From the IMG/VR virus record IMGVR_UViG_3300033182_000980, positions 62,001-126,000 of that record: a DNA stretch of 64,000 nucleotides; one strand, 5' to 3'. Below the pieces are notes generated by a model. The model saw only the letters and a program-made list of their open reading frames with translations, had not been told where the DNA came from and did not search any database. Positions within the stretch are counted from its first letter, which is position 1, and every line of letters begins with the position of its first letter. The translations under genes and the position numbers were made by a program. Below are positions 7,426 through 43,772 of this stretch, piece by piece.

Positions 7426-9027
7426 TCACTTAATCTTTGGTCGGGTGTCGCATCTCTGCCTTAGAAGGTAAAGATTTGTCTCGTGTGTGTTCGCCATAGA
7501 CATGATAAAGTCGTCCATACCTAATGTAAGGCCACCCTGCTCTTTAAGCATATCATAAGCGTTCTTAAAGATGACCTGTAGGCCCTCTTCAATCAATAAA
7601 GCTCTGCGTATCGGGTCATTCATGCTGTGAGCTTCGGCTAGAGGTAAGAGGTGGTTAGCCATGAGCTGTGCTTGTTCAACAGCATTAACAGCCTCTACCC
7701 CATATGTGCCGACAATCTTTTCAGCCAGTGTGTCGATTTCTTCAATAAGAGATGTGTAAATCCTCTCCATCAGCTCATGATCACCGTAGAAGCTTGATCC
7801 TTTAACCTGCCAATGGCTCGTCCAGTGTGCAAAGTGAGCACCACGAAGAACAGCTAAGAGCATTTGAAGTATGGCGAGGTTATCTGTCCGATCACAGGTG
7901 CTCGCTCTTTTGTTGTATCTCATAAGTTCTTTCTTAGCGTTCATGGCTTCCCTTGCATCATAAAACACGATCATCTCCGAGTGATTACCAGCTATACGAT
8001 AGAAATCTTCTTTGCGACCAATGAGATCTCTACGAGCTTGAGCAATAGACACTACCTCAACATCTTTGAGCTTAACAGGCTTATCCCAAATGACCTCCTC
8101 AACAAAGCCCTTTTTAGGCTTGGTGCTGGTCTTGAACTTTAAAGCCACCATCTCCTTAGCTCTGCTTTTCTTACCCCCACTCATCTGAACGGAGTAGACA
8201 TCCCAACCCCACACACCAGAGATCGCATATACACCACCAGCACTAGGTGCGTCATCATCCATGATGTGATTAGGTCTAAGATAGCCGTCTGCGATGATGT
8301 CATCTACTCGGTTCGCATAGGTGTAGTGATAGAAGAAATCTTTAGAGAGGTTAATGTGGTAGTAATACTTGCTAAAAGCATTGGATCCGTACTCTTCAAG
8401 TTCTTCATCATCAAGCTCACCACCCTCGTGATAAATCAGTTTTAGATCACGCAAAGAGGCTTGTTTATCTATGTGTCTCTTAGCTGGAGCATCTCTCTCA
8501 TCTAGGGTGAACTCTCTCCAAGCATCTTGGGGGTCTTCTTCTAAGACAGCGTAAGATCCTTCAATCAGATCGAAGAACATTTCCATGTCCTCTCTATCGT
8601 ACCACTCGACCCGATCTAAGAAATCGTTGAGGTCTACTACGATAGCCGTCTCACCTTCGACATAGATGTTAATGGCATCAAACATCTCGGACAGAGACAT
8701 GAGGTAAGCTGGCTTACCCTCGTAAACGAACTCTAGCTCGAATGGGAGGGAATACCCTATAGAGCCTCGTTTGTGCTTCTTGTAGTATTTCTTACGATAG
8801 TCTTGGCGATTCTTTCTATAGTTGGGATCAGTTCTCATTTTCTTCCTATGCTTCTTTCTGTTTTTTCGTCTTTGGACTAGATTAGTATTTCTCTTGCGTA
8901 AGTTTTTTGTCCTAGTCCTCATACGCCTTCTGCGTTTGATCTTAGGATTAGTCCTACGCTTAGTGCCAGCCTGTAGCTCTTCAGCAAAGAGGTCATCTGC
9001 AAGTATTTCGGCTAAGAAATCACTCAT
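7426..9027 (-). CDS. Multidomain protein: basic N-region, ADP-ribosyltransferase-fold-like domain, Dps/ferritin-like C-terminal domain
   Basis: Start at 9027 (overlaps upstream stop). FYHYT....IIADGYLRP is ART-like; AHFAHWTSHWQVKGSSFYGDHELMERIY...EIDTLAEK matches the Dps ferroxidase motif. Confidence 0.65.
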   Translation of the reverse strand: MSDFLAEILADDLFAEELQAGTKRRTNPKIKRRRRMRTRTKNLRKRNTNLVQRRKNRKKHRKKMRTDPNYRKNRQDYRKKYYKKHKRGSIGYSLPFELEFVYEGKPAYLMSLSEMFDAINIYVEGETAIVVDLNDFLDRVEWYDREDMEMFFDLIEGSYAVLEEDPQDAWREFTLDERDAPAKRHIDKQASLRDLKLIYHEGGELDDEELEEYGSNAFSKYYYHINLSKDFFYHYTYANRVDDIIADGYLRPNHIMDDDAPSAGGVYAISGVWGWDVYSVQMSGGKKSRAKEMVALKFKTSTKPKKGFVEEVIWDKPVKLKDVEVVSIAQARRDLIGRKEDFYRIAGNHSEMIVFYDAREAMNAKKELMRYNKRASTCDRTDNLAILQMLLAVLRGAHFAHWTSHWQVKGSSFYGDHELMERIYTSLIEEIDTLAEKIVGTYGVEAVNAVEQAQLMANHLLPLAEAHSMNDPIRRALLIEEGLQVIFKNAYDMLKEQGGLTLGMDDFIMSMANTHETNLYLLRQRCDTRPKIK

Positions 9028-10276
9028 GGTCAGCCTTCTTTCTCCGTTTTTCGGCTCGTTGGTTCTTCTGTTTAATGGTAGAGACACCACCGCCTGGTCT
9101 ACGCTTGTACTTCTCAGGGTTCTTAGCATAGTTTTTCTTGTACTTCTTGTAAGTAGGGTTATGTTTCTTACGCTTGTAGAGTCTCTTCTGCTTCAGAAGA
9201 TTTCTACGATATTTAACCCGATACCTACGCTTGTACTTTTGAGACTGGCGTTTGGCTTGCCCCTTTTGTTTCCTCTGTCGCTTATTTCCTTTAGGTGGGC
9301 GATAGTTGTATCGGAACAAAGCGACTTTGATGAGGTCATCTCCGTCTATATCCCAATACTCGAAATCTTCAACAGAACCCATGACCCTACGCTTTAGGCC
9401 GGTTGAAGTGGATTGGTCTATATGAGGGTTTCCATACTGATCGCCTGGAATACCACTTGATCTCGGACGCTCATGGAGGGCTTTTCCATCGGGATGATCG
9501 TTTAATGCACTTGGGTCTTTCTTTGGACGATTCGCTCCACCTTGACCACTAGAGTCGGGAGGTGAGTTAATAACTCCTGGACCAACTCTTTGTTCGTCAC
9601 GACCTTCTGGATGTCCACTAGGTAAAGGAAGAACTCGATCTCTTTGAGGCTTACCGTCTTCATAATCTTCTCTTGATTTCTGTGGTGATGAAGTGTCGTT
9701 ATTGATTTGGTCTTGTCGGGTTTTATCGACCCATGTTTTGACACCTGCTAAGTCTTGTGCCGGTTGAGCCGCTGACTGTAGATAGCGAAGGGCTACCCTA
9801 CTAGCAGACGCTTTCTTCTTCTCTGTGATCTCTTTAGCTTCTTCACTGAAAGTCGGAGTATTAACAGGCTTCTTCCCACGATGTTTCGCTTCTTCACGCC
9901 TTTTCTTTTTGGCAAGCTCGGCTCGGTCTTCTTTAGACATTCCCCATGCCTTCTCTCGTGGCATACACTTGAGGGGTTTTTTGCCCCCACTTGTAACATC
10001 TGACCACTCTTTTTCACTAGATATGGCACATGGGCCAACAATGTCTCCTGGTTCATAGGTCTTGTCCTCTCCATCTTCTTTTTTGATCGTGTGTTTTACA
10101 GGTGTTATAGCAATCCAATCGCCCCATGTAGCACGATCATCGGGATCTCCACCACCATGTCCTGCAAACCAAGTACCTAACCCACCCTTACCAGTGTTCT
10201 TTTTTTTGGGGTCATCACGCTTTACGGACTCTAAATAGCGTTCAGCAACCTTTTCGATAAGACTTTTATTTTTCAT
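9020..10276 (-). CDS. Hypothetical basic multidomain protein with RVA-type motifs
   Basis: MKNKSLIEKVAERYLES; KGGLGTWF; SRVALRYLQSA; very K/R-rich C-terminus. Start inferred from GAGGT spacing. Confidence 0.75.
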   Translation of the reverse strand: MKNKSLIEKVAERYLESVKRDDPKKKNTGKGGLGTWFAGHGGGDPDDRATWGDWIAITPVKHTIKKEDGEDKTYEPGDIVGPCAISSEKEWSDVTSGGKKPLKCMPREKAWGMSKEDRAELAKKKRREEAKHRGKKPVNTPTFSEEAKEITEKKKASASRVALRYLQSAAQPAQDLAGVKTWVDKTRQDQINNDTSSPQKSREDYEDGKPQRDRVLPLPSGHPEGRDEQRVGPGVINSPPDSSGQGGANRPKKDPSALNDHPDGKALHERPRSSGIPGDQYGNPHIDQSTSTGLKRRVMGSVEDFEYWDIDGDDLIKVALFRYNYRPPKGNKRQRKQKGQAKRQSQKYKRRYRVKYRRNLLKQKRLYKRKKHNPTYKKYKKNYAKNPEKYKRRPGGGVSTIKQKNQRAEKRRKKADHE

Positions 10277-10287
10277 CGCCATATACC

Positions 10288-12183
10288 TCAAGGCCTACTA
10301 GAGATGAGTACACATTTACCAGAAGAGGGGTACTTACTCGTAAGCCTAACCCAAAGTTTTTTAGCAGTCGGATTGGTACTGCCGTTTGGTACGCAATAGT
10401 GGGGGGCAAAAACGAAAGGCTTTTTCAACTCATCCCAAATGTGTCGTATAAACCCTAAATAAAGATGATCTCCTAGCCTCTGACCTAAGAAATCTTCGTA
10501 TATCTCGGACTCGGACACAAAAGCCAAATAGATACTTGAGGTTGATCTGTCTCCCGCCTTTTCTTGAAGAACCCCTATGTCATAGTCACAAGGGCTGTCA
10601 AAGTTATAACTCCTACCCCACTCATACACAGCACCTTGAATACAACCTAGTTCCTCACCACCCCAACTTGTCCCATCGTCCTCCTGCATTTGAAGATTGA
10701 GGAAGAAAAGCACATCTAACCTCTCATGTCTGGTGTGATACTTTAAATCTACTTCCTCAAACTTGTGAGGTATAGAAGATAGTTTCAAGTATCTATGAGC
10801 CACCCTCTTTGCAGACTTCTCATAGCAGTTCTTATAGGGGCGACATGAAGCCTTTTCAGAGAAGCCCATGTCATCACAGCTTTTAGACTCACAATGCTCT
10901 TTATCCCACTTGCGTGGCATCTTGAACTCGGAGCTTTGTTTCTTCCACTTGCCCCCTAATCGCTTGTACTGAGCCAAAGCCCAACCGTTAGCATAAGCCG
11001 ATGGGAAGGTCTGAAACCCCTTGCCTTCATTGACAGGATTGACGGACTCTTTACCCCTAGAAACAGGTTTACTAGACTCACCTTTAGCTAGAGCTTGTAT
11101 CTCGGACCATAGCTTCTCATCGGTAGGTATGCTCTTTCCCCCTGCTTTCCTTAGAGGTGAAGAGTTATTGGCGAAGCCACTATCATAAGGGATAACCCTA
11201 GCACTACCGCTACCACTATCATGCACATAACCTCCGTCAAAGCCCTCGGCGGGTTTACGACCATAGGACTCGGAACGATCAAGATTTCTCGATTTGAGGT
11301 TAGGTGAGTCGGGGCTTGGGCGACCTATATTCCTCGCCCCATCACCATTTGGCATTTGAGAGCCTTCACCTTTGTCCTTAAGGTCTGTGCTTTTACCTGT
11401 GGGTGTTCCATTACTAAGGGTGCTTAACTCATCGGGTGGGCTAACCTGCCTAAAGAAATCGGCAACACGCATTTTTGCTGTTTCGGGAAACTCATTTTTG
11501 ATCTTCCTCACAGCTTTAATGTACTTTTTAGGTGCGTACTTCGCTAAGTCTTTAAGCCATGCCATAGGCTCTTTTAAATGCTTAGACCTGTATGAAGGAC
11601 GACTCGACTCACCTACAACATAAGAAACGATGTTTGCCACTTCATTTGGCTTTCTTCTCGATACGAAGTTGATTGCATTGATGGTGTCCTCTAAGCGAGG
11701 GTAAAACTCATTGTCATCTAAGCGATGGTGGAGTAGCTCACCTGTTTCTTGTCTATATTGTGGAGTCCTCTCCCTAAGACCAGGAAGCCCTGCTGTTGGA
11801 GAGTCCGCTCTCGGATCACCGTCTCGTGATCTGGTATAAAGGATTTGATATACATGAACCAACTCGTGTGCGACTACTCTATGAAGGGCTTCTGCTAGTT
11901 CTCTACCCTCATAGTTTTCTTCAAAGTAGAGAAGGTTCACATAAAGAACAGAGTTAGTTGGATCGTATTTAGCTTCAACTCTACTATACTTTTCGGACGC
12001 ACTAGGGGGTATGATCTCTACCCTCAAGTCTAAGTCCTCTACATGACCGCGAGTCCTCGGTGGTGGGGGTACAGTGACATTTTTACTAAGTTTGTCATAG
12101 ACACCGACTTGGCTTAATAAGTATTCTTCGACTTGTTCCACCACAGCTCTAGGTGGTCTTATTCTACTCGTTCTACTCTGCAT
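10288..12183 (-). CDS. Multidomain protein: HExxH zincin-like domain, PSAYANG/KRLGG module, Cys module, GNAT-like C-terminus
   Basis: VAHELVHVYQ; FPSAYANGWALAQYKRLGG; MPRKWDKEHC...GFSEKASCRPYKNCY; FLGQRLGDHLY...TNPTAKKLW. Preceded by a TAGTTTCTTTAT motif and GGAG RBS. Confidence 0.65.
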   Translation of the reverse strand: MQSRTSRIRPPRAVVEQVEEYLLSQVGVYDKLSKNVTVPPPPRTRGHVEDLDLRVEIIPPSASEKYSRVEAKYDPTNSVLYVNLLYFEENYEGRELAEALHRVVAHELVHVYQILYTRSRDGDPRADSPTAGLPGLRERTPQYRQETGELLHHRLDDNEFYPRLEDTINAINFVSRRKPNEVANIVSYVVGESSRPSYRSKHLKEPMAWLKDLAKYAPKKYIKAVRKIKNEFPETAKMRVADFFRQVSPPDELSTLSNGTPTGKSTDLKDKGEGSQMPNGDGARNIGRPSPDSPNLKSRNLDRSESYGRKPAEGFDGGYVHDSGSGSARVIPYDSGFANNSSPLRKAGGKSIPTDEKLWSEIQALAKGESSKPVSRGKESVNPVNEGKGFQTFPSAYANGWALAQYKRLGGKWKKQSSEFKMPRKWDKEHCESKSCDDMGFSEKASCRPYKNCYEKSAKRVAHRYLKLSSIPHKFEEVDLKYHTRHERLDVLFFLNLQMQEDDGTSWGGEELGCIQGAVYEWGRSYNFDSPCDYDIGVLQEKAGDRSTSSIYLAFVSESEIYEDFLGQRLGDHLYLGFIRHIWDELKKPFVFAPHYCVPNGSTNPTAKKLWVRLTSKYPSSGKCVLISSRP

Positions 12184-12212
12184 AATAAGCTCCTTTTCTT
12201 TATATTGGAGCG

Positions 12213-12224
12213 ATAAAGAAACTA
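12213..12224 (-). promoter_or_regulatory. Motif A
   Basis: TAGTTTCTTTAT upstream of the 12183-7426 operon. Confidence 0.6.
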
Positions 12225-12228
12225 TAAC

Positions 12229-12799: not shown

Positions 12800-13308
12800 G
12801 CAAACGAGCTGAACGGATAAAAGAGAAGATCCCCATCCTCTCGGTATTAAGTGCCTATAACTATGATGTACATGGTCGGGATCATCAGCAACAGTTTAGA
12901 TGCGACCTACATGGTGATGGTTCGGATAACGCACCCTCGGCTCGTGTGTATCCAGAGACAAACACATGGTTCTGTTTCGCCTGTGGTAAAGTGCGAGACT
13001 CCATCGCTACGGTCATGGAGAAAGAGGGGTTAGACTTTGGTAAGGCTTGTACTGCCCTTGAACTCAAATATGGACTTGAGGTCTGGAAGTACGAGCCTAA
13101 GAAGGACATCTTTGAGGACACCTATGAAGACCCTACACGCAAGGAAATACTAGTGCGTAGGGTAGAGGGTCTATTAAACGAGAAAACCTCTAGGAGAGAG
13201 GATTATGAGGACACCTTACGCTATTGGGAGGTGTTCAATATGCTCTCCTCACTAGAGGACTCTAAGGTGCGTCAATGGGAGAAGCTATATAAGGCTTTAT
13301 CCTCTTAG
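12796..13308 (+). CDS. Stand-alone CHC2 zinc-finger protein (DnaG primase zinc-binding domain)
   Basis: FRCDLHGD...PSARVY...WFCFACG; ATGA overlap with the upstream gene; no TOPRIM domain. Confidence 0.85.
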   Translation: MSKRAERIKEKIPILSVLSAYNYDVHGRDHQQQFRCDLHGDGSDNAPSARVYPETNTWFCFACGKVRDSIATVMEKEGLDFGKACTALELKYGLEVWKYEPKKDIFEDTYEDPTRKEILVRRVEGLLNEKTSRREDYEDTLRYWEVFNMLSSLEDSKVRQWEKLYKALSS

Positions 13309-14981
13309 AAGCGACCACCGTCATCTTCTGGTGGGTTATACTTTAAGCCAAGATTTTTAGCGATGATCTCAATCGCTTCTGTGTTCTCGGCTAACATACG
13401 ACCTGCTTCGCCATAGACACCTCTAAGAACCTCATTAAACTGAGAGTCATTGAGCGTCCACATATCACGCTCAAGTTTAGCCTTAGTGGTCATAGGGTCT
13501 ACATTGAGGAGTTCTAAGATCACATCAATATCCAATGACCCCTTCTGATAAAGATTGAAGAGGGCATCGAATGTATCTTGGTTGTCTCTTAGCCCAAGTC
13601 GAGTGAAGCTAAGGGTAGGGTGTATTACAACCTCATCACCATCTTCATCTTCCTCAATGAAGCCCATGCGTCTACACATCGGTTTCAAGATGTTCTCCTC
13701 GACCATCTCTTGAAGAACCTCACGCATGAGCATATAGCGTGTGTTGATGACTTCTAGGTTGATCCTATCACCACTATAGCTTGACTCGCCCGAAAGCAGA
13801 GACTCGGTAACACCTAGACCAGCATACATTTGTCGGTCGGTCATGTCGTATTCACCCGATAGCTCAAGTAGACGAGAGTCTGCACCCATCTCCTCCCAAG
13901 AAACTTGGAAGTTAGCGATGATCGAGTAATCGGGGTCTTGGAGTGCAAGGTCAACTTGATCTCTTAACTCCTCAACATCAGCCGCGTCCATATCTTCTGC
14001 ATAAACGAGTCGGATAGGTGTCATGTGTCTTGAGGCGATTGAGGTTTGAGCCTGTCTTAACTTATCACGATACACCAAGATTCTGAGGCAACGCTCAAGC
14101 ATGGAGTGTCCACGAGGCTCATATTGAGATTTCTTACGAGCCATGTAGTAGACGAACGACCCTTGATCTGGATCGGTGTTGAGGTCAATGTTGCGTCCAT
14201 CTCGGATGGCTTCAACGACATCACCTGGCATTGAGTCTACTATCCTAAGAGCTGAAGGATCATTAACCGAAGCTCGTTCGACTACATCACGAGTCTTGCT
14301 GTCGGGGATGAGCTGGATGATCTTTTCGTTGGTGAAAGGAAAGCTCTCCATGTGGACTTGTTCGGGAGGGAGGATGCGAACACCAGTCCACCCTTTATAG
14401 TTCTTCTTGAGCCACTTGTAAGCTCGTTCATGGGAGTCCTCATATTCAGTCCACTCTGTGAAGGCAGACCCATCTTCTTTGAGAACATTCCGACCACTAT
14501 GAGTCACCTCTTGAGGCACATCTGGATTATTATCTTCACAGAAAACGAACACCTCACCGAGTAGGTTAAACTCATGTAGGATTTCTATAAGGCGGTGAAG
14601 TAGTCCGACACGCTTCGCCCACTTTTCACAGAACCTAAGTGCCTCATAAGCCATATCCCGATTACGAGCTTTGGGTAGACCTAATCTGATCTTAGAGAGG
14701 GGTAGCTCTGTATGTAGGTCTATCGCTTGACCTACGAAGGGGTCTGTTCGATAGAAGAACCTAAAATAGTTGCGTTGTTCGTCTTGGCTTTGGGGTAGCT
14801 CAAGGAAGTCAGTCGATAGCTCTGGTGAGTAGAAGTTCCCACCCGATCCCATCATAGAGCCACCTGTGGTCATAGCGACCTTGACTCTTGATTTCATCTC
14901 GGCAGGATTGAGCTTACGAGTGATCGCTTTTGATCGGGGTTTAATCTTCCCAACTGGTTTGGCTTCTAGTTCTTCGCTCAT
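13305..14981 (-). CDS. Phage portal protein
   Basis: 558 aa; RFFYRTDPFVGQAIDLHTELPLS, YEPRGHSMLERCLRIL and SYSG..INLEV resemble large-phage portal sequences. Confidence 0.7.
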   Translation of the reverse strand: MSEELEAKPVGKIKPRSKAITRKLNPAEMKSRVKVAMTTGGSMMGSGGNFYSPELSTDFLELPQSQDEQRNYFRFFYRTDPFVGQAIDLHTELPLSKIRLGLPKARNRDMAYEALRFCEKWAKRVGLLHRLIEILHEFNLLGEVFVFCEDNNPDVPQEVTHSGRNVLKEDGSAFTEWTEYEDSHERAYKWLKKNYKGWTGVRILPPEQVHMESFPFTNEKIIQLIPDSKTRDVVERASVNDPSALRIVDSMPGDVVEAIRDGRNIDLNTDPDQGSFVYYMARKKSQYEPRGHSMLERCLRILVYRDKLRQAQTSIASRHMTPIRLVYAEDMDAADVEELRDQVDLALQDPDYSIIANFQVSWEEMGADSRLLELSGEYDMTDRQMYAGLGVTESLLSGESSYSGDRINLEVINTRYMLMREVLQEMVEENILKPMCRRMGFIEEDEDGDEVVIHPTLSFTRLGLRDNQDTFDALFNLYQKGSLDIDVILELLNVDPMTTKAKLERDMWTLNDSQFNEVLRGVYGEAGRMLAENTEAIEIIAKNLGLKYNPPEDDGGRF

Positions 14982-16105: not shown

Positions 16106-17827
16106 ATGAGAGACAATCAGATATACCTCTACAATACCACAGTAGATGAAGCACTAGAGATACTTGGGATGGAATCTCGTAGAGACACAGCCCTCATTAA
16201 CCATGACGAGTTTGAAGTTAAGCTCAATAAAAAAGGCGACCATGTTATGGTGACTCTGTTAAGGGGTCTTGGCGACATGGACATTGATGACGGCATTATT
16301 CAGATCAAGATTGATTTTCCAGGTAAGTACCGAGATATGGAGAGCATTGATCGTGTACGAGCCGTTCTTGCACTTAATCCAAACAGCGATTGGTGGAAGG
16401 GCATCGTAGAGGAGCTTGAGGAGGGCTATCCTTTATCATGGAAAGTCGAAGAAATCTTGATTGAAACTGAAGAGCGTATTGAGAATCCAGATGAGGATGT
16501 ACTTGCTATGCTCGACCAAGCGATTGCAAGCAATCCTCGTTTTAGACTCCTTCAATCTTTCAAACAGCAAGTTTTATCTGGTCGTGAACTTTCAGAGCGA
16601 CAGATGGAGATCCTTGAGGAGAACTTAGGTTCAAGTGTTCCCTCAAACACCAATCAGATCGCTCGGATTAATGAAGCTCTCGCACTTGATCCTAGAAATC
16701 GTTTCGTTAGCCAGCTCAAGCAAAAAGCCGAGAATGGCATCACTTTGTCCGAGAGACAGATGAATGTGGTGGAAGAGATCATCGGAAGTCAGTCATCTCC
16801 TGCCGCTAAGATGCTCGCTGACCTTAAAGCCAATGCTTATCTTGAGCGTGAGGACTTTATGCTTATCAATAAAGGTCAGCGTAGGGGCATTGACTCACTC
16901 AATGATGAGGAGCGTAAGCGTTTGCGTCATCTCATCTACCGTAATGAGCGTAAGCTCGACAACACTTACTCCAAAGATGAAGTCAGAAGGCTTCTAAAGA
17001 AAGGAACAGCTATGCGTAGACTCGCTAGTGAAGTTATTCGTGATCTTGAGATGAGGATTGCTCGTCTTGAGGCAAACCTCAATCGTACTGCAAGCATGAC
17101 TCGTGAAGCCGCTGGAGATCCTCAGCTCGCTGGAGTTCGCTCAAGCACAGCTTACCATGAGGGTCGCTCAATGGCAGAGGCTACCTCTTGTATGCTTTAT
17201 CTCATCGGTGAGTCAGAGAATAAGAGCAAGTTCTACGAGATGGTCATCAACGGTTCTACCGTAGAAATCCTTTATGGTCGTCTCGGTTCTACCGGTCGTA
17301 GAGCAGATAAGTCATTCATGGACTCTTATGATGCACAGGCTTTCTTTGTTAAACAGCTCAAGTCTAAGCTCAAGAAAGGTTATGTCTCTGCATTCGCACA
17401 GCGTGGCGAGCATCGTAAGAGCGGTCCTCTCTATGGAACTTACCCAATCGGACTTACCTCTACTCCTGGACCTTGGCAGAACCAAGACATCGCTTATGAC
17501 CAAGCGATGATTACAGATACAGTTTCTGTTGTTCGTGCGGCGATTGCTTCATTCCAAGAGGACGGTATTGTTGATGAGCGAGCAATTGCTATGCTTATGT
17601 CTACACAGCGTTCACTCGGATTAAACAGGGATCAACTCTCACAAGAGTGTGCTAAAGAGATCGGTCTTGCTCTTGATCGTATCCAAGGTACAGGTCGTGC
17701 GGGTCGTCAGCCTGTTGAAGTTCGTACTCGTACTGCCATCAAGGGTCTACAGAAACTCATGCGTAAACTTGAGGGTGCTATGACTGGTGGTCGTAGAAGA
17801 GCTTTTTATCAAAAAAAAAATTGGTAA
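16106..17827 (+). CDS. Repeat-containing protein with internal MRRLASE leader and WGR domain
   Basis: Tandem ~50-aa repeats (NP..F..S.KQ....G..LSERQM..IEE); MRRLASEVIRDLEMRIARLE from 17012; NKSKFYEM...VEILYGRLGSTG...KLKKGY is WGR-like. Confidence 0.75.
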   Translation: MRDNQIYLYNTTVDEALEILGMESRRDTALINHDEFEVKLNKKGDHVMVTLLRGLGDMDIDDGIIQIKIDFPGKYRDMESIDRVRAVLALNPNSDWWKGIVEELEEGYPLSWKVEEILIETEERIENPDEDVLAMLDQAIASNPRFRLLQSFKQQVLSGRELSERQMEILEENLGSSVPSNTNQIARINEALALDPRNRFVSQLKQKAENGITLSERQMNVVEEIIGSQSSPAAKMLADLKANAYLEREDFMLINKGQRRGIDSLNDEERKRLRHLIYRNERKLDNTYSKDEVRRLLKKGTAMRRLASEVIRDLEMRIARLEANLNRTASMTREAAGDPQLAGVRSSTAYHEGRSMAEATSCMLYLIGESENKSKFYEMVINGSTVEILYGRLGSTGRRADKSFMDSYDAQAFFVKQLKSKLKKGYVSAFAQRGEHRKSGPLYGTYPIGLTSTPGPWQNQDIAYDQAMITDTVSVVRAAIASFQEDGIVDERAIAMLMSTQRSLGLNRDQLSQECAKEIGLALDRIQGTGRAGRQPVEVRTRTAIKGLQKLMRKLEGAMTGGRRRAFYQKKNW

Positions 17828-18482: not shown

Positions 18483-18904
18483 TGATGTATCGTAGAGATG
18501 GGTTGATCTTTATGACCCTAAATGATCCTCATTGGAATAACCCTAAGATCGCTAAGATCCTTCCTTATGAGAGTACAAATTGGGGTGCGTTCTCTGACCT
18601 AGTAGGGACACCTGTAGAGCGTTTAATCCCCGAAGTCTCGCATGATATACTCGACCAAGCAATGAGAGGGTTCACAACCCCTCTGATGAACCAAAACCTT
18701 AGAGAGCCTAGAGGCTGTCTAAAACTCCTTGATGTACCCAAAGATTGTGACGAAAAAGACCACTGTCTTTCGTATAACAAAGACCGATGTATCTTGGGGC
18801 ATCGTAAAATGCCAGAGTGCTTTTCACCACTCGCCACTCAATCTCTTAGACCTCTTGTTCTAGCTTGGCTAGAAGGATTCCACATAATCCGTGAAAGGGC
18901 ATGA
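18482..18904 (+). CDS. Hypothetical Cys-containing protein
   Basis: Translationally coupled (TAATG); C..C..C...C pattern. Confidence 0.7.
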   Translation: MMYRRDGLIFMTLNDPHWNNPKIAKILPYESTNWGAFSDLVGTPVERLIPEVSHDILDQAMRGFTTPLMNQNLREPRGCLKLLDVPKDCDEKDHCLSYNKDRCILGHRKMPECFSPLATQSLRPLVLAWLEGFHIIRERA

Positions 18905-19554
18905 TTATGAAATACTTTAACCACCCACCCACAATGCGTAGAGTTTATGATGACGAAGAAGCTCAAACTCAACATCGGAAAAACGCACAAGCCGATTTCT
19001 ATGGTGAGATTACGGTAAGCGACAACCACATCTACCTCTATCAAGGCATCTCTCCCAAGGCTGTTATGGAGATGGGCATCGCTATCAAGTCCATTGGTCA
19101 ACAGATCATCAACATGGTCACTGATCTTGGACTCTCCCAAGCACCTGCTATCCACCTTCACATTAACTCTGGTGGTGGGTGTGCCTTTAGTGGTCTTGCT
19201 GGAGCGAGCCATATCTTAGACTCGGACATCCCTGTGTTCACCTATGTAGAGGGTTCAGCGGCTTCTGCGGCCACGATCATGTCTTGTGTCGGGGCTAAAC
19301 GCTTCATCACAGAGCATAGCTTCATGCTCATTCACCAGATCAGCACTGGTGTATGGGGTACATACGAGAACCTAAACGATGAGAAAGAGTCTATGGACTC
19401 GCTCATGGAGATGTTGGAGTCAATCTACCTCAAGAACACCAAGATGAAGAAGAAGCAACTCAAAGAGCTTCTAAAGCGTGATCTCTGGATGAACCCTAAG
19501 AAGTGTCTTGAGCTTGGATTGGTAGACGAGATCATCAAGTACGAGCGTGTTTAA
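18901..19554 (+). CDS. clpP: ClpP-like serine protease
   Basis: IHLHINSGGG, EGSAASAATIM (catalytic Ser), SFMLIHQ (His), RDLWMNPKKCLELGLVDEI. Confidence 0.85.
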   Translation: MIMKYFNHPPTMRRVYDDEEAQTQHRKNAQADFYGEITVSDNHIYLYQGISPKAVMEMGIAIKSIGQQIINMVTDLGLSQAPAIHLHINSGGGCAFSGLAGASHILDSDIPVFTYVEGSAASAATIMSCVGAKRFITEHSFMLIHQISTGVWGTYENLNDEKESMDSLMEMLESIYLKNTKMKKKQLKELLKRDLWMNPKKCLELGLVDEIIKYERV

Positions 19555-19605: not shown

Positions 19606-20145
19606 TTGATTATGTGGGATAATGATGACATCGTATTCGGGTCGTTTCAAAAGACCTCAAGCATGGACGCTGTTCTTGAGACTAAGATTTCTGATCTAAC
19701 AGATCGTGGTCGCAAGAACAAAGCTACAGCCGCCAACTTTGAAGATGGTATGCGTGTAGTGGCTCACACTAATAATGGTGTAGTCATTCCTGGTCAGCTC
19801 CCGACTGCTGGTACAAAGGGAACAGTCGTATCTGTTAAAACTGCAACAGGTGATGTGACCTCCCTTGATGGAGAGGTGTTTGTTCAGTTTGACGGACGCA
19901 ACAAGATTGATCGGATTCCAGCTAACTTTCTGCGTGTGGCAAGCATGAAGGTTGCGAGCATTGATGATCACTTCATCGTGCTAAGTGGACCTAATCTTTC
20001 AGCGAGCTTTATGAGCGTAGCAGGTGGTGAGTCAACCCTAGTGCATAAGGCGACCCAAGACCTTTGGAGCATGAAGGTGTCTGACGATGGGTCATATGAT
20101 GTAGAGCGTCTGTTTGACGACAATGGTGATCCACTTAAACTTTGA
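19606..20145 (+). CDS. Hypothetical, putative virion protein
   Basis: Preceded by TAGTTTCTTTAT and AGGAG; contains KTS/S and RVA/SMKVA/S linkers. Confidence 0.7.
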   Translation: MIMWDNDDIVFGSFQKTSSMDAVLETKISDLTDRGRKNKATAANFEDGMRVVAHTNNGVVIPGQLPTAGTKGTVVSVKTATGDVTSLDGEVFVQFDGRNKIDRIPANFLRVASMKVASIDDHFIVLSGPNLSASFMSVAGGESTLVHKATQDLWSMKVSDDGSYDVERLFDDNGDPLKL

Positions 20146-24340: not shown

Positions 24341-24440
24341 ATAATAAATACCACAAGCATAAGAGTCGCTTGGTTCTTCTTTGAGAGATCTCAAGTGCAA
24401 CTATGAGAAAAAACCGATTGAAAAAATGAAAGGAAAAGGC

Positions 24441-29901: not shown

Positions 29902-30456
29902 ATGAACTACAATCGCATGATCCGAAGAGTCGCTTCTGCACACATGAGGAAGCTCGCACAAGAGAAGCCAGCAAGCGTTATGTTCGCTGAAGCTGTTATT
30001 GATACGAGAGACTTACTCAACTGGTTTCAAGATCAATCTGGTCTTGATCCCGAAGCAATGGGTTGGAAGGTTGCCGCCCACCACATGACCATAGAATTCT
30101 TTGACAAGAAAGAAAAGAAAGCTCTTAAGAGAGAGGGTCGTGCAGAGTCTAACATCCTTGAGCCTTATGCTGATCTCATTGGTAAGTCTGTTATTCTTGA
30201 TCTAGTCGGTTATGCACATGACGATAAGGGCATGGCTGTTCTTGTTGAGCCTAAAGGTCCTCTAGCTCGCCTTGTTAAGAACGCTGATCCACATATCACC
30301 ATCGCTACTAATGGTGTCGGGGCTAAATACAGCAACGAGCTTCTTGCAAAGGGAGAAATCATTCCAGCTCGTGGTTCGATTCAAGCACGAGTCGGCTGGA
30401 AAGATGCTCGTTCGGGTCAAGATATGTACGATCTTCCTTGGGACTTTGGTCAGTAA
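29902..30456 (+). CDS. 2H phosphoesterase (tRNA-ligase CPDase-like) with RVA-type leader
   Basis: Two HxT motifs: AHHMTI and DPHITIA; N-terminal MIRRVASAHMRKLA. Confidence 0.75.
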   Translation: MNYNRMIRRVASAHMRKLAQEKPASVMFAEAVIDTRDLLNWFQDQSGLDPEAMGWKVAAHHMTIEFFDKKEKKALKREGRAESNILEPYADLIGKSVILDLVGYAHDDKGMAVLVEPKGPLARLVKNADPHITIATNGVGAKYSNELLAKGEIIPARGSIQARVGWKDARSGQDMYDLPWDFGQ

Positions 30457-32286: not shown

Positions 32287-33375
32287 ATGGCTAAAGGCTA
32301 TTATGTTTATCGTCAGTTCAACAAGAGGACAGGCGAGTATTACATCGGCAAGGGTACTTACTCTGATCGAGATCCCGATGGGAGTAAGTACAAAGGCTCT
32401 GGTATCTTGCTCTTGCGTAAAATGAACGCTCACCCAAATGACTTTGAGAAAGAAATCTTAAAGGATTTCGAGAGCGAAGAGGACGCTTACGCTTATGAGG
32501 CAGAGCTTGTGGGTGAGAGGTATATCGGTGGTGCAGACCATGACCCACTTTGTTTGAACATGAACAGTGGAGGCATGGGTTCGTCCTCTAATGCTTTGAA
32601 GCATTATTACTCTAACCCTATCGTGAAGATGGAGATGAGTGAGAGGATGAAAACCTTATGGGAAGATGAGGATTATCGGGAGAAAGTTCTAGCTTCAAGG
32701 GAGGGTGAAGCTAGAGAGAGGTGGCACGAGTCTCATCAAAAGGCTCTTAAAGACCCAGAGGTGAGAGCGAGAATAAAGGAGGGGGCAAACAATCCTCACA
32801 AAAAGAAATCAGTGCGAGAGGCACAGATTAAAATGAAACCGATCAATGTCGAGAAAGACGGAGTGGAGATTGAGATCCCTAGAGGAGAGTTAGCCGATTA
32901 CTTTAGGTTGGGTTGGTCGCTTTGCTCTAAGGGTGTTGTGAACATTCACCATATGGACATTGGGATATATAGCTGTGGTCAGCATGATGTGGTGAAGCAT
33001 CTTGTGTTGGAGCATGGATTCAAGTTTGGAACTCACTATGACTTAGAGCGGGTTAACTATGATGTGATCTCTAAGTTAGCGGGTGTTCGGGAGGCCAAGT
33101 CTAAGGGTCAGATGGGGAATTGGTCTTTGAAGCCTGTGAAGCTGATTAACTTAGAGGGTGAGGTAGAGCTTGTGCCCCGTGATGTTTACTTGGACAAGTT
33201 AGAGGAGGGCTATACCTTTAAGAGTGCGAATGTGATAATAAGAAACCACACGCTCAAGCAGACTTGCGTCTTAGGCAAGGGTAGAGCGAGGAGGGTCTTG
33301 CTAGAAAGGGGAGGTTGGGAGCTTGGTAGCAAGCGAGGTTATGAGGCAGTGAGTACCAAGTCTCTTGATTTGTAG
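32287..33375 (+). CDS. Free-standing GIY-YIG (Seg-like) homing endonuclease
   Basis: YYVY...TGEYYIGKG, YKGSG, AYAYEAEL, CLN; located downstream of nrdB. Confidence 0.8.
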   Translation: MAKGYYVYRQFNKRTGEYYIGKGTYSDRDPDGSKYKGSGILLLRKMNAHPNDFEKEILKDFESEEDAYAYEAELVGERYIGGADHDPLCLNMNSGGMGSSSNALKHYYSNPIVKMEMSERMKTLWEDEDYREKVLASREGEARERWHESHQKALKDPEVRARIKEGANNPHKKKSVREAQIKMKPINVEKDGVEIEIPRGELADYFRLGWSLCSKGVVNIHHMDIGIYSCGQHDVVKHLVLEHGFKFGTHYDLERVNYDVISKLAGVREAKSKGQMGNWSLKPVKLINLEGEVELVPRDVYLDKLEEGYTFKSANVIIRNHTLKQTCVLGKGRARRVLLERGGWELGSKRGYEAVSTKSLDL

Positions 33376-33384
33376 TTTATTTAT
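33373..33384 (+). promoter_or_regulatory. Motif A
   Basis: TAGTTTATTTAT upstream of leader protein 2; TAG is the GIY-YIG stop. Confidence 0.65.
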
Positions 33385-33434
33385 TGACTCTCCATTGGTG
33401 ATCTTTAACCCTTAACCGACAATGGAGAACTATT

Positions 33435-33779
33435 ATGAGAAGATCAGCAAGCGAAGTCTTAAGAAACTTAGAAATGCGTATCGCAAGACTTGAGAAGCAA
33501 GCAGGATTCACTGTAGGGCAAGAAGTACCTTATACACTAAGAACCCTTAAAAAAGTGATGTCAGAGGGTTATGGATTCAAAGTGATAAGTGTAGGGGGGG
33601 GTTTGAGTGATACTCTTGAATACAGTTTAACCTCCGAGCAAGTGGCTAAGATCAGTTCTAGGGGGAAGGTTGATGTTATGCTAAAAAACATTCAACAAGA
33701 GCTAAAGTTCTCGATAGAGCCTAACCTAAAGAGGAAGGGTCGTAAAAACTTCATTGTCCTCACAGAAAACCCTGCTTAA
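33435..33779 (+). CDS. MRRSASE-leader protein 2
   Basis: MRRSASEVLRNLEMRIARLEKQA. Confidence 0.85.
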   Translation: MRRSASEVLRNLEMRIARLEKQAGFTVGQEVPYTLRTLKKVMSEGYGFKVISVGGGLSDTLEYSLTSEQVAKISSRGKVDVMLKNIQQELKFSIEPNLKRKGRKNFIVLTENPA

Positions 33780-33872: not shown

Positions 33873-33922
33873 AGGTTCTCCATTGGTGATCTTTTAACCC
33901 TTTAACCTCATGGAGAAATAAA

Positions 33923-34249
33923 ATGAGAAGATCAGCATCAGAAATTATCAGAAATCTTGAGCAAAGAATTGCTCGTCTTGAAAGTGAAAATGCGAAGACC
34001 GCAGGTCTTATGACAGTCCACACCTTAGATACAAGTAGTCGTGAAATACCTTACGGCACAACTGAATCAGAAGTTATGAACACTCAAGACCTTCCAAGTT
34101 TGCTTTTAAAGTCTGAAGTGACCATTACAAGAGACGGACTACAAGCAATAGATAGAGACGGTCGAGTCCACACGATTGAAATCTCAAAAGACGAGCTTAT
34201 TAAAGCTCTACTACCTCTAGCTAGACCTACATCTGTTAAGATGAAATAA
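33923..34249 (+). CDS. MRRSASE-leader protein 3
   Basis: MRRSASEIIRNLEQRIARLESENAKTA. Confidence 0.85.
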   Translation: MRRSASEIIRNLEQRIARLESENAKTAGLMTVHTLDTSSREIPYGTTESEVMNTQDLPSLLLKSEVTITRDGLQAIDRDGRVHTIEISKDELIKALLPLARPTSVKMK

Positions 34250-35190: not shown

Positions 35191-35784
35191 ATGAGAAATC
35201 TTGTTGCGAGAGTGGCGACAAAGTATATGAAAACAAGCTCGGAGAATCTTGAGCTTCATATCTTTGACTTTGATAACACATTGTTCCGTAGCCCCGAACC
35301 ACCAGAGTGGTGGTCGAATAAGAAAATGGGCTATTGGTTCAATGAGGCTATTAGTTTGAGTGAGCCTTTTATCCCTCAAAAGCCAAGTGGGGATTATTGG
35401 TATGGGAGCGTTGTCGGTGAGGCTAAACGCTCTATCTCTAACATGGACACTCTTGCGATCATGTGTACAGGTCGCCTTAATGATAACGGTGCGATGCGTT
35501 ATCGTGTTGCCGAGTTATTAAAGGGTAAAGGGTTGGACTTTGATGAGGTTCACCTAAAGCCAGGTACAGGATCGACATCTCGCTACAAGGCTAAACTGAC
35601 CTTTGATCTCCTCAAGAAGTACCCAAACATTCAGAGCGTGTCTGTTTGGGAAGATACTCAGAAGAACCTCGATGCCATTGAGACAGTGTGTGATCACTTT
35701 GGCGTTGAGTTCAACGCTCACCTCATTAAACCTAACCCATACCCTGTCTCTATCACCAAAGAGCAGTATGACCTGCTAAAGTAA
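35191..35784 (+). CDS. HAD-superfamily phosphatase (Swiss-army-knife RNA-repair-like HAD) with RVA-type leader
   Basis: HIFDFDNTLFRSP (DxD), CTGR, LKP, VWED; N-terminal LVARVATKYMKTS. Confidence 0.75.
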   Translation: MRNLVARVATKYMKTSSENLELHIFDFDNTLFRSPEPPEWWSNKKMGYWFNEAISLSEPFIPQKPSGDYWYGSVVGEAKRSISNMDTLAIMCTGRLNDNGAMRYRVAELLKGKGLDFDEVHLKPGTGSTSRYKAKLTFDLLKKYPNIQSVSVWEDTQKNLDAIETVCDHFGVEFNAHLIKPNPYPVSITKEQYDLLK

Positions 35785-39100: not shown

Positions 39101-39107
39101 GAAATCT

Positions 39108-39155: not shown

Positions 39156-39197
39156 CATAAGAGTTAAATCATATAACATGAGGAAAATGATCTCTAG

Positions 39198-41294: not shown

Positions 41295-42484
41295 ACGAAG
41301 ATAGTATCTTCTCTATCTGCACCCGTTGAAATGATCGACACTGGACAAACCTTCTCGCTTATATAACCAACATAAGCCTTTAGGTTCGCATGGAGGAATG
41401 AGTAGTCTTGAACACCCGCTGTATTATCCCAGCCGTCAAAGACTTCCATGCCCCCCTTCAATCCAATCTTTACCTCGCTAAACCCATCGAGGACATCAAC
41501 CTTGGTGAGAGCGAGTGAGGTAAAGCCATTTAGGATTTGAGCTTCCCGAAGCATTGGTAGCGAGTTCCAACCACAGCGTCTAGCCCGACCTGTGACTACT
41601 CCAAACTCACCCCCTTGAGTCCTTAGACGCTCACCAAGTTCACCTGTGTCCTCTAACCCAAATGGTCCAGCACCAACTCGTGTGCAATAGGCTTTCACTA
41701 CCCCAATGATTTCTGCATCACGAGGTAAGGCACAGCCAATACCTGCACTAATGCCTCCTGCAATCGTAGTAGAACTTGTTACGAATGGGTATGTGCCATG
41801 TGAGATGTCGAGGAATGTACCTTGAGCACCCTCAATGATGATCTTATTTGCTCCACCATTCATGGCTTCATGGAGCTTCACAGACAGGTTGTCATAGATG
41901 AATGGTATCCAGTTATTTCTCCACTTGTTCAACTTGGACATGATTTGCTCCTGTACAAGAGGAGCTGATAAACCGCCATGAGCCATAGCGATGAGCTTGG
42001 TTTTCTCTGCCCATGTCTTTGGGTCGAGTAGATCACCGACTCTTAAACCAATGCGTCTGGCTTTATCTTCATAGCAGACACCGATACCGTTGCGAGTTGT
42101 TCCGATACGATTGTCAGATTTCTCTTCACGAGCTGTATCTACCTCAATGTGGATAGGGAGGATGAGATGAGCACGATGGTCGATGAGAACCCTCTTACTT
42201 GCTTCCTCATAACCAACCATTTTACAGAGCATATCGAACTCACCTTGGAGAACATCAAGGTTGATCGCCATACCAGCTCCGAGTACACCCTTTGCTCCTC
42301 TTAGGACACCAGAGGGGAGGAGTCGGAGCTTGTATGTCTCCCCACCAAAGATGATGGTATGCCCAGCGTTGCTTCCCCCTTGAAAACGGATGCAGTAGTC
42401 AGCGTTGCCCGACAAGAAATCAACGATCTTGCCTTTACCCTCATCACCCCATTGAGCACCGATTACAGCTATGACTTGAGTCAT
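41291..42484 (-). CDS. purA: Adenylosuccinate synthetase
   Basis: QWGDEGKGK, RFQGGSNAGHT, EGAQG, GTYPFVTSS, GEFGVVTGRARRCGW, LTKVDVLDG. Confidence 0.95.
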   Translation of the reverse strand: MTQVIAVIGAQWGDEGKGKIVDFLSGNADYCIRFQGGSNAGHTIIFGGETYKLRLLPSGVLRGAKGVLGAGMAINLDVLQGEFDMLCKMVGYEEASKRVLIDHRAHLILPIHIEVDTAREEKSDNRIGTTRNGIGVCYEDKARRIGLRVGDLLDPKTWAEKTKLIAMAHGGLSAPLVQEQIMSKLNKWRNNWIPFIYDNLSVKLHEAMNGGANKIIIEGAQGTFLDISHGTYPFVTSSTTIAGGISAGIGCALPRDAEIIGVVKAYCTRVGAGPFGLEDTGELGERLRTQGGEFGVVTGRARRCGWNSLPMLREAQILNGFTSLALTKVDVLDGFSEVKIGLKGGMEVFDGWDNTAGVQDYSFLHANLKAYVGYISEKVCPVSIISTGADREDTIFV

Positions 42485-42503
42485 TTGTATCTCCATTAGT
42501 TAA

Positions 42504-42515
42504 TAGTTTGTTTAT
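42504..42515 (+). promoter_or_regulatory. Motif A
   Basis: TAGTTTGTTTAT upstream of 42558. Confidence 0.6.
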
Positions 42516-42557
42516 TGATACCAAGCTATAAACAAGAACCTTGAAAGGAAATGCTTT

Positions 42558-43772
42558 ATGGCCTATCACTTTGATCCCGAAAGTCTCTCACGAGCGATTA
42601 TAAACGAAGCCGAGCAAACAAAAGCACTCAAGTTAAGTCGTTTATCCCATGAAGATATGGTGGGTCTACTCTTACTCACGCTTGCATATAACGAAAAATT
42701 TCACAAGCAGGTTAGAAGGCTGGAAGACTTACTTGATGCCGATGTTCTATTCTTTACATCTAACCGAAAACTTCAGAAGATGGCTCTAACCCTTTGCTAT
42801 GAACTAGAGGCGGATGGTGCGGCTATAGCTCGTGTGATCGTTAATGCTTCTAAAGATAAAAGCATTGAGGGTGCACTTAAAAGAGTTGGGCTTTATGGGG
42901 GGAGAATCCGTGAAGGATCTCATCTTGGAAGAAAAGCGTCTGCTAGACAACACCATGAAGAGATGATGGCTAAGTTTCGTATGCCTCGCCTTGATCGTGA
43001 TCGCTACACCCCATTAAAAGGAATGGAAGGCCCATTTCAGTTTAAGGGTGGAGAGATCCTTTATTATGATCCTCGTGAGGGCAAGTATTATGACCGAGAT
43101 GCTGATATGTATCTTTCAGATCGGGATGCTGACAGGATCACATCACGCACAGCCTACAAACTTGCTGGTAGTGGTTTGAAATCAGTCCAAACATTGCTTC
43201 CTGGCACAACAGACCGAGAAGCCAATCAGTTCCTCCACGCTCTATCTGCTTTGGTCGTAGACGGTGATGTCTTAGATTCACGCATACAGAAGATCAAAGG
43301 GGAGCTGGAGGTTGAGACACCCTCGCATGGTATTCACCCTAGCTCTCCTAGTTATCCAGAGAATGACTTTGTAAATGGCACAACAGGGGCTAAAGTGCAG
43401 TTAGAAATCGAGGTCGAAATGGACGACCTCGAAAGACTCGCCAAGATCAATGTGAGTGATCTATATCTGGATAATGCTAGAGCAGTCCATGCTTTGTGTG
43501 ATGCAATCACCAAGAACATCAATGGCAACATTCTTAGGAATATGGATGATGAGGAGCTTGATCTCGCTTTCGGTGAGGTACAGCATGAGGTCGAGTACGA
43601 TATACCAGAGTATCACAACCTCACTCACATTGAGATTGTTGAGCATGACTATAAGGTAATAGGCTTAGACCTTAAAGGTGATAGAGCAATCGTTGCAACT
43701 GTATTGGTTCGGGTGGAGTATGGCATCTTTGTTGAGTTCGATAAAGATGCTTGGGAAGCCGACAAATACTAA
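42558..43772 (+). CDS. Modular hypothetical protein, putative virion protein
   Basis: Preceded by TAGTTTGTTTAT; internal module MEGPF...ILYYDPREGKYYD...DMYL bounded by RKA/S and RTA/YKLA/G. Confidence 0.75.
   Translation: MAYHFDPESLSRAIINEAEQTKALKLSRLSHEDMVGLLLLTLAYNEKFHKQVRRLEDLLDADVLFFTSNRKLQKMALTLCYELEADGAAIARVIVNASKDKSIEGALKRVGLYGGRIREGSHLGRKASARQHHEEMMAKFRMPRLDRDRYTPLKGMEGPFQFKGGEILYYDPREGKYYDRDADMYLSDRDADRITSRTAYKLAGSGLKSVQTLLPGTTDREANQFLHALSALVVDGDVLDSRIQKIKGELEVETPSHGIHPSSPSYPENDFVNGTTGAKVQLEIEVEMDDLERLAKINVSDLYLDNARAVHALCDAITKNINGNILRNMDDEELDLAFGEVQHEVEYDIPEYHNLTHIEIVEHDYKVIGLDLKGDRAIVATVLVRVEYGIFVEFDKDAWEADKY

Follow-up and report, generated by a model that had tools for sequence, protein, structure and literature searches.

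A shared leader peptide and a recurrent [KR]-x-[AS] site suggest targeting and processing of head cargo and modular polyproteins in an uncultivated huge phage

In phage T4, the unrelated proteins IPI-III and Alt carry a capsid targeting sequence (CTS), a short N-terminal propeptide that directs them to the prohead core and ends at a site for the protease gp21. This protease cuts after Glu in I/L-x-E (PMC12991175). It has been suggested that the CTS evolved as a means of packaging different proteins (PMC9026906). Here we describe a comparable leader peptide in a 64,000-nucleotide stretch of DNA (the window) that is part of the 375,691-bp IMG/VR record IMGVR_UViG_3300033182_000980 (record positions ~62-126 kb). 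The leader stands on a set of unrelated proteins and ends in a [KR]-x-[AS] tripeptide that recurs at the module joints of polyproteins, and we suggest that, like the CTS, it may target its cargo and be cut off. An ADP-ribosyltransferase (Alt) is among the T4 cargo, and one module found here is possibly ADP-ribosyltransferase-like. The T4 CTS has 10-19 residues and is unrelated in sequence, whereas the leader described here has 23-27; the T4 cut follows Glu, whereas the residue before the presumed cut (P1) is here Ala or Ser, with Lys or Arg two positions upstream (P3). Unlike the CTS, the leader can be internal and then doubles as an inter-module linker, and the cargo is also concatenated into polyproteins with shuffling modules.

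In phiKZ and SPN3US, head, portal and ejection or inner-body proteins are extensively processed by the proteases gp175 and gp245, respectively, and lose propeptides of 20-254 residues that are cut at several sites (PMC10052503, PMC13282480). The consensus is A-X-E, with cleavage after Glu (PMC10052503). These are giant phages as well, and they too have a short processing consensus in head proteins, but the motif described here differs from A/S/G-X-E. Their substrates are single proteins that lose propeptides and no common leader has been described for them, whereas the proteins of the window include chains of independent modules and share a leader. The capsid lineage also differs from that of phiKZ, as the major capsid protein (MCP) is phage-G-like, ~290 aa long and without a long propeptide. 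Herpesvirus assemblin cuts its scaffold at (V/L/I)-x-A|S near the C-terminus and thereby releases a capsid-binding tail, and the HK97 gp4-type protease cuts the capsid protein after Lys. A [KR]-x-A|S just upstream of an invariant LSKLWESAPDVS peptide in the scaffold-like protein of our phage resembles such a release site. However, the ClpP fold of the protease candidate in the window is unrelated to these enzymes, and the resemblance of a second, gp19-like candidate to a herpesvirus protease was within noise. In encapsulins, cargo proteins of many kinds, often ferritin-like, are brought into an HK97-fold shell by a short conserved peptide. This peptide is as a rule C-terminal and is not removed, and encapsulins have no portal, scaffold or protease, in contrast to the tailed phage described here with its portal, scaffold, decoration and tail genes. 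Eukaryotic viral polyproteins and adenovirus core precursors are chained units freed by a viral protease at a short consensus in the assembling particle, with basic DNA-condensing peptides among the products, but their proteases and sites are unrelated to those discussed here. To our knowledge, polyproteins of freely permuted modules are undescribed for tailed phages. A literature search likewise found no description, for tailed phages, of freely permuted polyproteins or of a tag doubling as inter-module linker; a jumbo-phage review mentions no polyproteins, the leader sequence was found in no paper, and the multi-omics study of phage G reports no sites of cleavage (PMC12484599).

Six proteins of the window share the leader consensus M-R-R-S-A-S-E-[IV]-[IL]-R-x-L-E-x-R-[IV]-A-R-L-E, five at the N-terminus and one internally. 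The leader is amphipathic and ~23 residues long (23-27 residues including spacer forms). The N-terminal copies belong to genes 33435-33779(+), where leader residues 1-23 (33435-33503) end KQA|G and a late promoter-like element, motif A, lies upstream; 33923-34249(+), where the leader (33923-34003) has a 4-residue spacer before KTA|G; 43836-44306(+) (leader 43836-43907, ending KTA|N); 45342-46220(+) (leader 45342-45410, ending RQA|K); and 5935-6342(-) (leader 6274-6342, ending RQA|R). The internal copy, at 17012-17092 in the two-part protein encoded by the open reading frame (ORF) 16106-17827(+), separates an N-terminal domain from a WGR-domain cargo and ends NRTA|S; relatives of this protein have the same internal-leader architecture, and the one at locus L068 carries a different cargo. 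The ends RQA, KQA, KTA and RTA that the initial annotation had given for the leaders were confirmed by translation for all six. As with the T4 CTS, one short N-terminal peptide is common to many otherwise unrelated proteins of one phage. The sequences downstream of the leaders are mutually unrelated and mostly without a Pfam family, and among ten long leader cargos from relatives no Pfam family scored above threshold, the sole listed match, RyR, being below cutoff.

At least 15 leader copies are present in the whole genome. A pattern scan of IMG/VR gave 131 copies confirmed by tblastn, often several per contig, and a profile built from the six window leaders retrieved 980 clusters (50% identity) at E<=0.001 among 1.84 billion representatives, with almost all matches beginning at residue 1. 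The leader copies differ by synonymous codons, so the peptide is what is under selection. A degenerate leader, LLNLERRVADLE, is found on the protein at 5345-5938(+), whose DUF4258 match is marginal (25.1 versus a Pfam cutoff of 25 bits). In a more distant relative (L172:4872-7178), a 769-aa polyprotein has DUF4258 as its N-terminal module, together with basic and GSA.VIP modules. Three tandem paralogs in a 297-kb relative (L095, 1168-4108, minus strand) have a diverged leader, RKIAHLEARLARLEREAG, that still ends R-E-A|G.

The first setting of the [KR]x[AS] tripeptide is the end of the leader. Among 72 distinct IMG/VR leader copies it follows directly after ..LE in 53 and lies within 9 residues in 69, against a background of 2.6% per position further downstream in the same copies. 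Independent cluster representatives gave a similar picture, with the motif directly after the leader in 115/145 and within 10 residues in 142/145 (background 1.6%), so that the enrichment at leader ends is ~30-fold. The following residue (P1') is in most copies S, G or A, and the sequences beyond it are not conserved. Copies with additional residues before the tripeptide (LESENAKTA, LEANLNRTA, LESATRKTA) still have it, which favours a recognised sequence over a fixed helix end.

The bare tripeptide is common, being expected about once per 40-60 residues in these proteins, and over 51 window ORFs it was observed 303 times against 293 expected from residue shuffles. When the 14 motif-A or leader genes were pooled, [KR].[AS] occurred 110 times versus 87.4 expected (z 3.0), [KR].[AS][SGA] 41 times versus 18.1 (z 5.7) and [KR].A[SG] 22 times versus 5.5 (z 7.2), the small-P1' preference in the 4-mer tests being partly learned from the same family. 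The replication and other genes showed no excess of the motif (z -0.6 to 1.0), and the reversed motif was in excess in no gene set. The enrichment in motif-A over replication genes that the initial annotation had asked about is real for the pooled genes and is absent from single proteins.

The second setting of the site is an operon on the minus strand that encodes three polyproteins. Polyprotein A (10288-12183(-), 631 aa) consists of HExxH, ADFFRQVSPPD, PSAY, Cys-rich and C-terminal modules, with motif A at 12211-12225 and joints at RVA (11461-11469), RKA|G (11143-11151), KQS|S (10933-10941) and RVAHRYLKLS|S (10777-10806, with KLS|S at 10777-10785). Polyprotein B (9020-10291(-)) has the N-terminal element KVAERYLES and two modules joined at KKA|SAS-RVALRYLQSA (9770-9817(-)), followed by a protamine-like basic tail. 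In polyprotein C (7426-9027(-)), a basic module at the N-terminus is combined with one that is possibly ADP-ribosyltransferase-like and one that is Dps/ferritin-like, with joints KQA|S (8458-8466(-)) and KRA|S (7903-7911(-)). The ADP-ribosyltransferase-like label comes from weak language-model neighbours (scores 0.89-0.90), and an AF2 model of polyprotein C from a 16-row alignment was confident in the Dps domain and the basic helices only. Across the three polyproteins, six of the eight [KR].[AS][SGA] matches lie at module joints. Protamine-like segments very rich in K, R and Y, such as KRRYRVKYRRNLLKQKRLYKRKKH, occur at 9020-9300(-) and 8750-9027(-). Polyproteins of relatives have them as conserved modules too, and their role may be to condense DNA in the head.

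A search with the 631-aa protein gave 18 related loci besides that of the window, and BLAST of the three operon proteins against the ORFs of these relatives showed the same modules reordered, placed in other ORFs, duplicated or standing alone as genes. One 506-aa ORF, for example, has the PSAY/Cys module, the first module of polyprotein B and the ADFF module in that order (L086), and the PSAY/Cys and Dps modules are separate genes at L089 and L090. Joints were defined as alignment boundaries and collapsed to 100 that were mutually <70% identical over 36 residues. [KR].[AS] lay within 6 residues of 66 of the 100 joints versus 23.5±4.2 at random positions (z 10.2), and [KR].[AS][SGA] at 39 versus 7.4 expected (z 12.5), the junctions and homologs being phylogenetically non-independent; the placement of the motif at domain boundaries, as first proposed from the window, holds across relatives. 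The composition-matched controls [AS].[KR], [KR][AS] and [KR]..[AS] gave z 3.5-4.9 at the same joints, and [DE].[AS] was not enriched there (z -0.6). The joint profile has K or R at P3, a variable P2 in which K is commonest, A and S at P1 in a ratio of 49:17, and S or G at P1'. The 12-mers that encode the joint sites are distinct in 63/66 cases and use all Ala codons and both Arg codon families, so the signal is at the protein level and not that of a DNA recombination site. The same module was also seen to keep its site before changing partners: the ...GSGSARVIPYDSGF.NNSS module ends L-R-K-A, Y-R-S-A, L-R-N-A, I-R-K-A or L-K-Q-A before five different partners, and the ...TFSEEAKE module ends KKKA, KKS, KKA, KSA or KRA before eight. 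Different upstream modules lead into the Dps module through KRA|S, KKS|S, RVA|S, KQA|S, KKA|S or RKA|H.

These results bear on the explanation by chance or composition, namely that the motif is to be expected in proteins rich in K, R, A and S and that copies near boundaries were picked by the reader. The per-protein counts do equal the shuffled expectation, and a minority of the copies in the polyproteins are at joints. However, the ~30-fold excess at leader ends, the difference between the joints and their composition-matched controls, the restriction of the pooled 4-mer excess to the motif-A gene set and the invariance of the scaffold sites in 51 relatives, described below, make chance very improbable.

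The leader and the joints are connected by exchanges at the site. The two-module protein 42558-43772(+) has a 127-residue N-terminal module that ends ..GSHLGRKA|SARQHHEEMMAK (RKA|S at 42930-42938) and a tandem site, RTA|YKLA|G, at 43146-43166. Its homolog at L024 instead starts with a short leader, ..IRNLEVRIANLEKRS|SAKRHHEEMMAK, ending KRS|S, and the leader replaces the N-terminal module exactly at the RKA|S site. The tandem site is conserved in this homolog as RNA|SLKQA|G. Furthermore, an internal half-leader, R-[IV]-A-R-L-E-[KR]-x-[AS], lies between two modules in 6/149 cluster representatives, and 2 more of the 149 have a full internal leader. A related-looking element, [KR]-V-A-x-x-[YH]-[LM]-[KRQ]-x-[AS], is found five times in the window, N-terminally in the 35191 and 29902 proteins and in polyprotein B and also at two joints, and recurs at the joints of relatives. 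This RVAxRYL-type element looks like a diverged half-leader, a link that we draw from the internal half-leaders and not from profile similarity. Tripeptides within RVAxRYLKxS elements, which the initial annotation had counted separately, are present but belong to this one longer linker motif.

Two of the copies form N-terminal mini-leaders on enzymes of the window. The 2H-phosphoesterase-like protein 29902-30456(+), with a weak Pfam match (21.9 versus a cutoff of 23 bits), has RVASAHMRKLA|Q near its N-terminus (29926-29958, with KLA|Q at 29950-29958), and the HAD phosphatase 35191-35784(+), of the SAK_1 type (Swiss Army Knife RNA repair), likewise has RVATKYMKTS|S (35209-35238, with KTS|S at 35230-35238). 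In L080 and L083 the HAD domain is found upstream of an internal full leader instead of in the mini-leader arrangement. The mini-leaders hint that RNA-repair enzymes are among the delivered cargo. A small late protein encoded downstream of a protease gene (19606-20145(+)) has the linker RVA|SMKVA|S at 19933-19959, which is partly conserved (RRSS|S) in the nearest record, the 485-kb uncultured phage LR745208.1, whose portal is 72% identical. All joint tripeptides that had been listed for the 9027(-), 12183(-), 42558, 19606, 29902 and 35191 proteins were found again by translation. Two of the listed sites are present but not supported: the N-terminal KTS|S of the 19606 protein (19651-19659) is not conserved in the LR745208 homolog, and RTA|S in the TopIB tail (1038-1046) has no comparative support.

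The main alternative is that the leader is an uncleaved coiled-coil or docking helix, for capsid loading, oligomerisation or another partner, that [KR]-x-[AS]-[SG] is its cap or hinge, and that the polyproteins are uncut multidomain proteins of the ordinary kind with the same hinge in their linkers. Helices are often capped by S or G, and domain shuffling without cleavage is common. The heptad-like hydrophobic pattern of the leader fits such a helix, as does the KRA|S of polyprotein C, which in the AF2 model lies in the helix leading into the Dps bundle, and the bare tripeptide is not enriched per protein. However, the motif is kept when its distance from the helix changes, the same 4-mer is found at joints with unrelated flanks, stand-alone module genes begin right after the site, and the leader and an unrelated 127-aa module are interchangeable at it. 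With the scaffold tail, in which P3 and P1 are invariant and P2 is variable, these observations lead us to regard an uncleaved helix as unlikely, although it is the first of the alternatives to be considered.

The scaffold is encoded outside the window, at locus L152 of the same genome, where the gene order is gp19-like protease, acidic scaffold-like protein, decoration-like protein and MCP. Two sites stand out in 51 distinct scaffold tails, K(90%)-x-A(88%)-[SA] behind an acidic region rich in repeats and, nearer the invariant C-terminal LSKLWESAPDVS peptide, [KR](100%)-[E/V/T]-A(100%)-S(82%; Ser/Ala 92%). Invariant P3 and P1 with a variable P2 are typical of a recognition site, and the scaffold tail, and probably also the N-termini of the portal and of the gp19-like protease, carry the same site as the leaders. 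The scaffold-like protein (L152:1664-3205) also has long acidic E/T/S repeats and an EF-hand motif (PF13202 and PF00036, both above cutoff), and its C-terminal peptide, LSKLWESAPDVSKFFG, hardly varies within the clade. The idea that the leader mimics a scaffold segment, RVARLA, was dropped when the segment was found in 8/51 scaffolds only. The portal (13305-14981(-)) has an N-terminal K-V-A|M at 14874-14882, already noted in the initial annotation, and this is conserved as K-[V/I/H]-A|M in relatives, even in LR745208, ~17 residues before a conserved FYSPELS block; in the phage G portal, gp14, the corresponding position is occupied by RKMA|S. In the gp19-like protease, V-R-[IV]-A|S-G is present in 25/25 sequences (43-95% identity), in a region with a predicted local distance difference test score (pLDDT) of ~30, and gp19 of phage G itself has VKIA|G, KVA|S and KIA|S. 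A basic-x-small site as proposed from the window does appear to be a selected element common to leader ends, joints and scaffold tail, but the bare tripeptide is insufficient: most copies lie off the joints, and context and a small P1' residue matter.

Two enzymes are candidates for the protease. The one in the window, 18901-19554(+), is of the ClpP family (S14), with PF00574 at 92.1 bits versus a cutoff of 20.2 and phrog_94 (head maturation protease) at E 1.7e-43. Its Ser-His-Asp motifs are intact when aligned to human ClpP (GSAAS/GQAAS, LIHQ/MIHQ and KRD/ERD), an assignment that rests on the established ClpP motifs. The gene is on the same strand and in the same cluster as leader gene 16106. 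The homolog in a 290-kb relative is located between MCP and polyproteins; a single-protein scan for co-occurrence with leaders reached close relatives only. The second candidate is the gp19-like protease (L152:178-1626), ~9-10 kb before the window start, with 38% identity to phage G gp19 over 128 aa (E 7e-21) and a match to phrog_18299 (E 4.9e-14). As it precedes the scaffold and MCP genes, the ClpP-type enzyme of the window is not the sole candidate. An AF2 model of the gp19-like protease (pLDDT 57) gave no significant match with Foldseek, and with VIA the human cytomegalovirus protease came up at Z 4.8 and rank 3, which is within noise.

Motif A ([AG]TAGTTTNTTTAT), the promoter-like element, may place these genes in a common expression class. 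It is found at 33372-33386(+) and at 3667, 5290, 6385-6399(-), 12211-12225(-), 16054, 19554, 29842, 33860, 42503, 43772, 45293 and 57025, with 15 matches in all versus 1.8 expected. It lies upstream of the leader genes, the polyprotein operon and genes 19606, 29902 and 42558, and also before the Mtd_N tail-fibre-like gene 57084 and, in L152, before the decoration and MCP genes. Because the element is shared with decoration, MCP and tail-fibre genes, the leader and polyprotein genes are most likely late and virion-associated. Downstream of motif A, several 5' untranslated regions can form hairpins in which the Shine-Dalgarno GGAG pairs with an upstream CUCC, at 33385-33440(+), 33873-33928(+), 6337-6392(-) and 12178-12225(-), with energies of -12.1, -12.3 and -15.7 kcal/mol and z of -2.9, -1.0 and -3.8. 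The same hairpin was seen by eye after 5291 and at L152:6299 and is absent from 43786-43841 and 45292-45347. The hairpins may serve translational control of late or cargo genes.

An alternative that ranks next is that the proteins are processed elsewhere, either cut in the cytoplasm by a host or another phage protease or directed by the leader to a place other than the head, with products that are late but non-virion proteins. The presence of these proteins in the particle is presumed, the Pfam scans of leader cargo were uninformative, and the product of the ClpP-type gene may be a genuine ClpP. In phage G, which has genes for ClpP and ClpX, both were detected in particle preparations (PMC12484599), and we also count this for the alternative. 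On the other hand, the same site is found in head-assembly proteins (the scaffold tail and the N-termini of the gp19-like protease and the portal), the polyprotein operon adjoins the portal gene, and the ClpP-type gene is placed between MCP and polyproteins in the 290-kb relative. Motif A is common to MCP and tail-fibre genes, and modules of the basic protamine-like and Dps-like kinds are in keeping with a place on the DNA in the head. Processing outside the head is, in our judgement, improbable.

On balance we favour the reading that the leader targets cargo to the capsid and that cargo and polyproteins are processed at [KR]-x-[AS]↓[S/G/A] by a head maturation protease. From the motif with its conservation and its position at joints, from the shuffling of modules and from the shared promoter motif we infer the cleavage, the exact scissile bond, the packaging in the head and the responsible protease. 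The leader would dock varied, unrelated cargo to the assembling core or shell, and the maturation protease would then remove it by cutting after the small residue of [KR]-x-[AS]. The same cut would separate the polyprotein modules, which would enter the prohead as a single chain and be set free within it; the joint site either stands alone or is part of a linker helix that resembles the leader (R-[IV]-A-R-L-E-K-x-A or RVAxRYLKxS). The same protease, either the ClpP-type enzyme 18901-19554 or the gp19-like enzyme beside the scaffold and MCP genes, would dismantle the scaffold and remove the propeptides of portal and protease. Protamine-like basic segments and the Dps-like module would stay with the DNA, and the enzymes delivered with it may include the HExxH module, a possible ADP-ribosyltransferase, an RNA-repair-type HAD, a weakly supported 2H protein, and the WGR and DUF4258 proteins.

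Several points weigh against this processing model. Cleavage is deduced from comparison, and an S or G that follows a basic-x-Ala helix end may cap the helix or serve as a hinge instead of marking a scissile bond. The three large polyprotein ORFs of the 12183->7426 operon have [KR]x[AS] at the level of shuffles (z = 0.9, -1.5 and 0.1), so the tripeptide count in a single protein is uninformative, and most copies inside the polyproteins lie away from joints and would have to escape cutting. The non-independence of junctions and homologs means that the z-scores overstate significance. The start of polyprotein A is without a recognisable full leader, which leaves its targeting unexplained, and the leader hidden Markov model had no significant match to the RVAxRYL element. 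Of the two protease candidates, neither can be tied to the motif. Finally, the 41-kb portal-MCP region of LR745208 has no leader copies and little synteny, and from this absence of leaders it follows that the system is not universal in the lineage.

A stronger version would be that the 9-residue R-[IV]-A-R-L-E-[KR]-x-[AS] and its RVAxRYLKxS variant are a portable load-and-cut tag of a large huge-phage clade, by itself sufficient, N-terminally or between modules, for procapsid recruitment and release by the protease. We put this forward as a tentative proposal that could well prove too far-reaching.

The source is an uncultivated huge phage of the phage-G-like capsid lineage. Its MCP gene, just outside the window at L152, encodes a protein with ~90% identity among hundreds of IMG/VR contigs, each 100-600 kb long, and 37% identity to the phage G MCP, and the portals of Tunturi_5 and Bacillus phage G are distant relatives of the window portal. 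Megablast of 5.4 kb of the stretch against GenBank phages gave no match, so there is no close relative at the DNA level in that set, and tblastn with one leader protein against GenBank phages gave nothing at E<=1, probably because the leader is too short. The window also encodes replication and nucleotide genes, the ClpP-type protease and two giant tail-fibre-like ORFs. The giant ORFs (49760-63338(+), 2421 and 2084 aa), which probably encode tail fibres, have few [KR]x[AS] tripeptides (0.6-0.7 per 100 aa); the second lies behind motif A and starts with an Mtd_N (major tropism determinant N-terminal) domain. The large subunit of ribonucleotide reductase (24381-27101(+)) is apparently interrupted by an intein, from ..GSNLC|VRGDTQVL... 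to ...GVLTGN|CNEIHL. The ORFs 2804-3670 and 4657-5286 (2804-5286(+)) look like halves of one nucleotide-metabolism enzyme, split by the HNH/homing-endonuclease ORF 3690-4667 (phrog_559); motif A lies directly before 3690, and the downstream half starts after ..TVVHN|SAC, which is intein-like.

Nearly all huge phages are uncultivated. If the processing model is correct, a tag with a defined end would make the set of proteins that they package or inject along with their DNA readable from metagenomes; this genome would contribute at least 15 such genes, and the protein clusters overall would number about a thousand. The site [KR]-x-[AS]↓small would be a new head-protease specificity, distinct from that of the Glu-specific T4 and phiKZ enzymes. 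The tag might also be a tool for loading foreign proteins into large capsids, as has been done with the T4 CTS. Polyproteins that can be permuted in tailed phages would parallel strategies of eukaryotic viruses and would explain the exchange of effector repertoires. If the leader is indeed a load-and-cut tag, these phages would assemble, permute and exchange cassettes of injected effectors, including DNA-coating, RNA-repair, ADP-ribosylating and toxin-like modules, and the injected proteome of uncultivated megaphages would be predictable from sequence.

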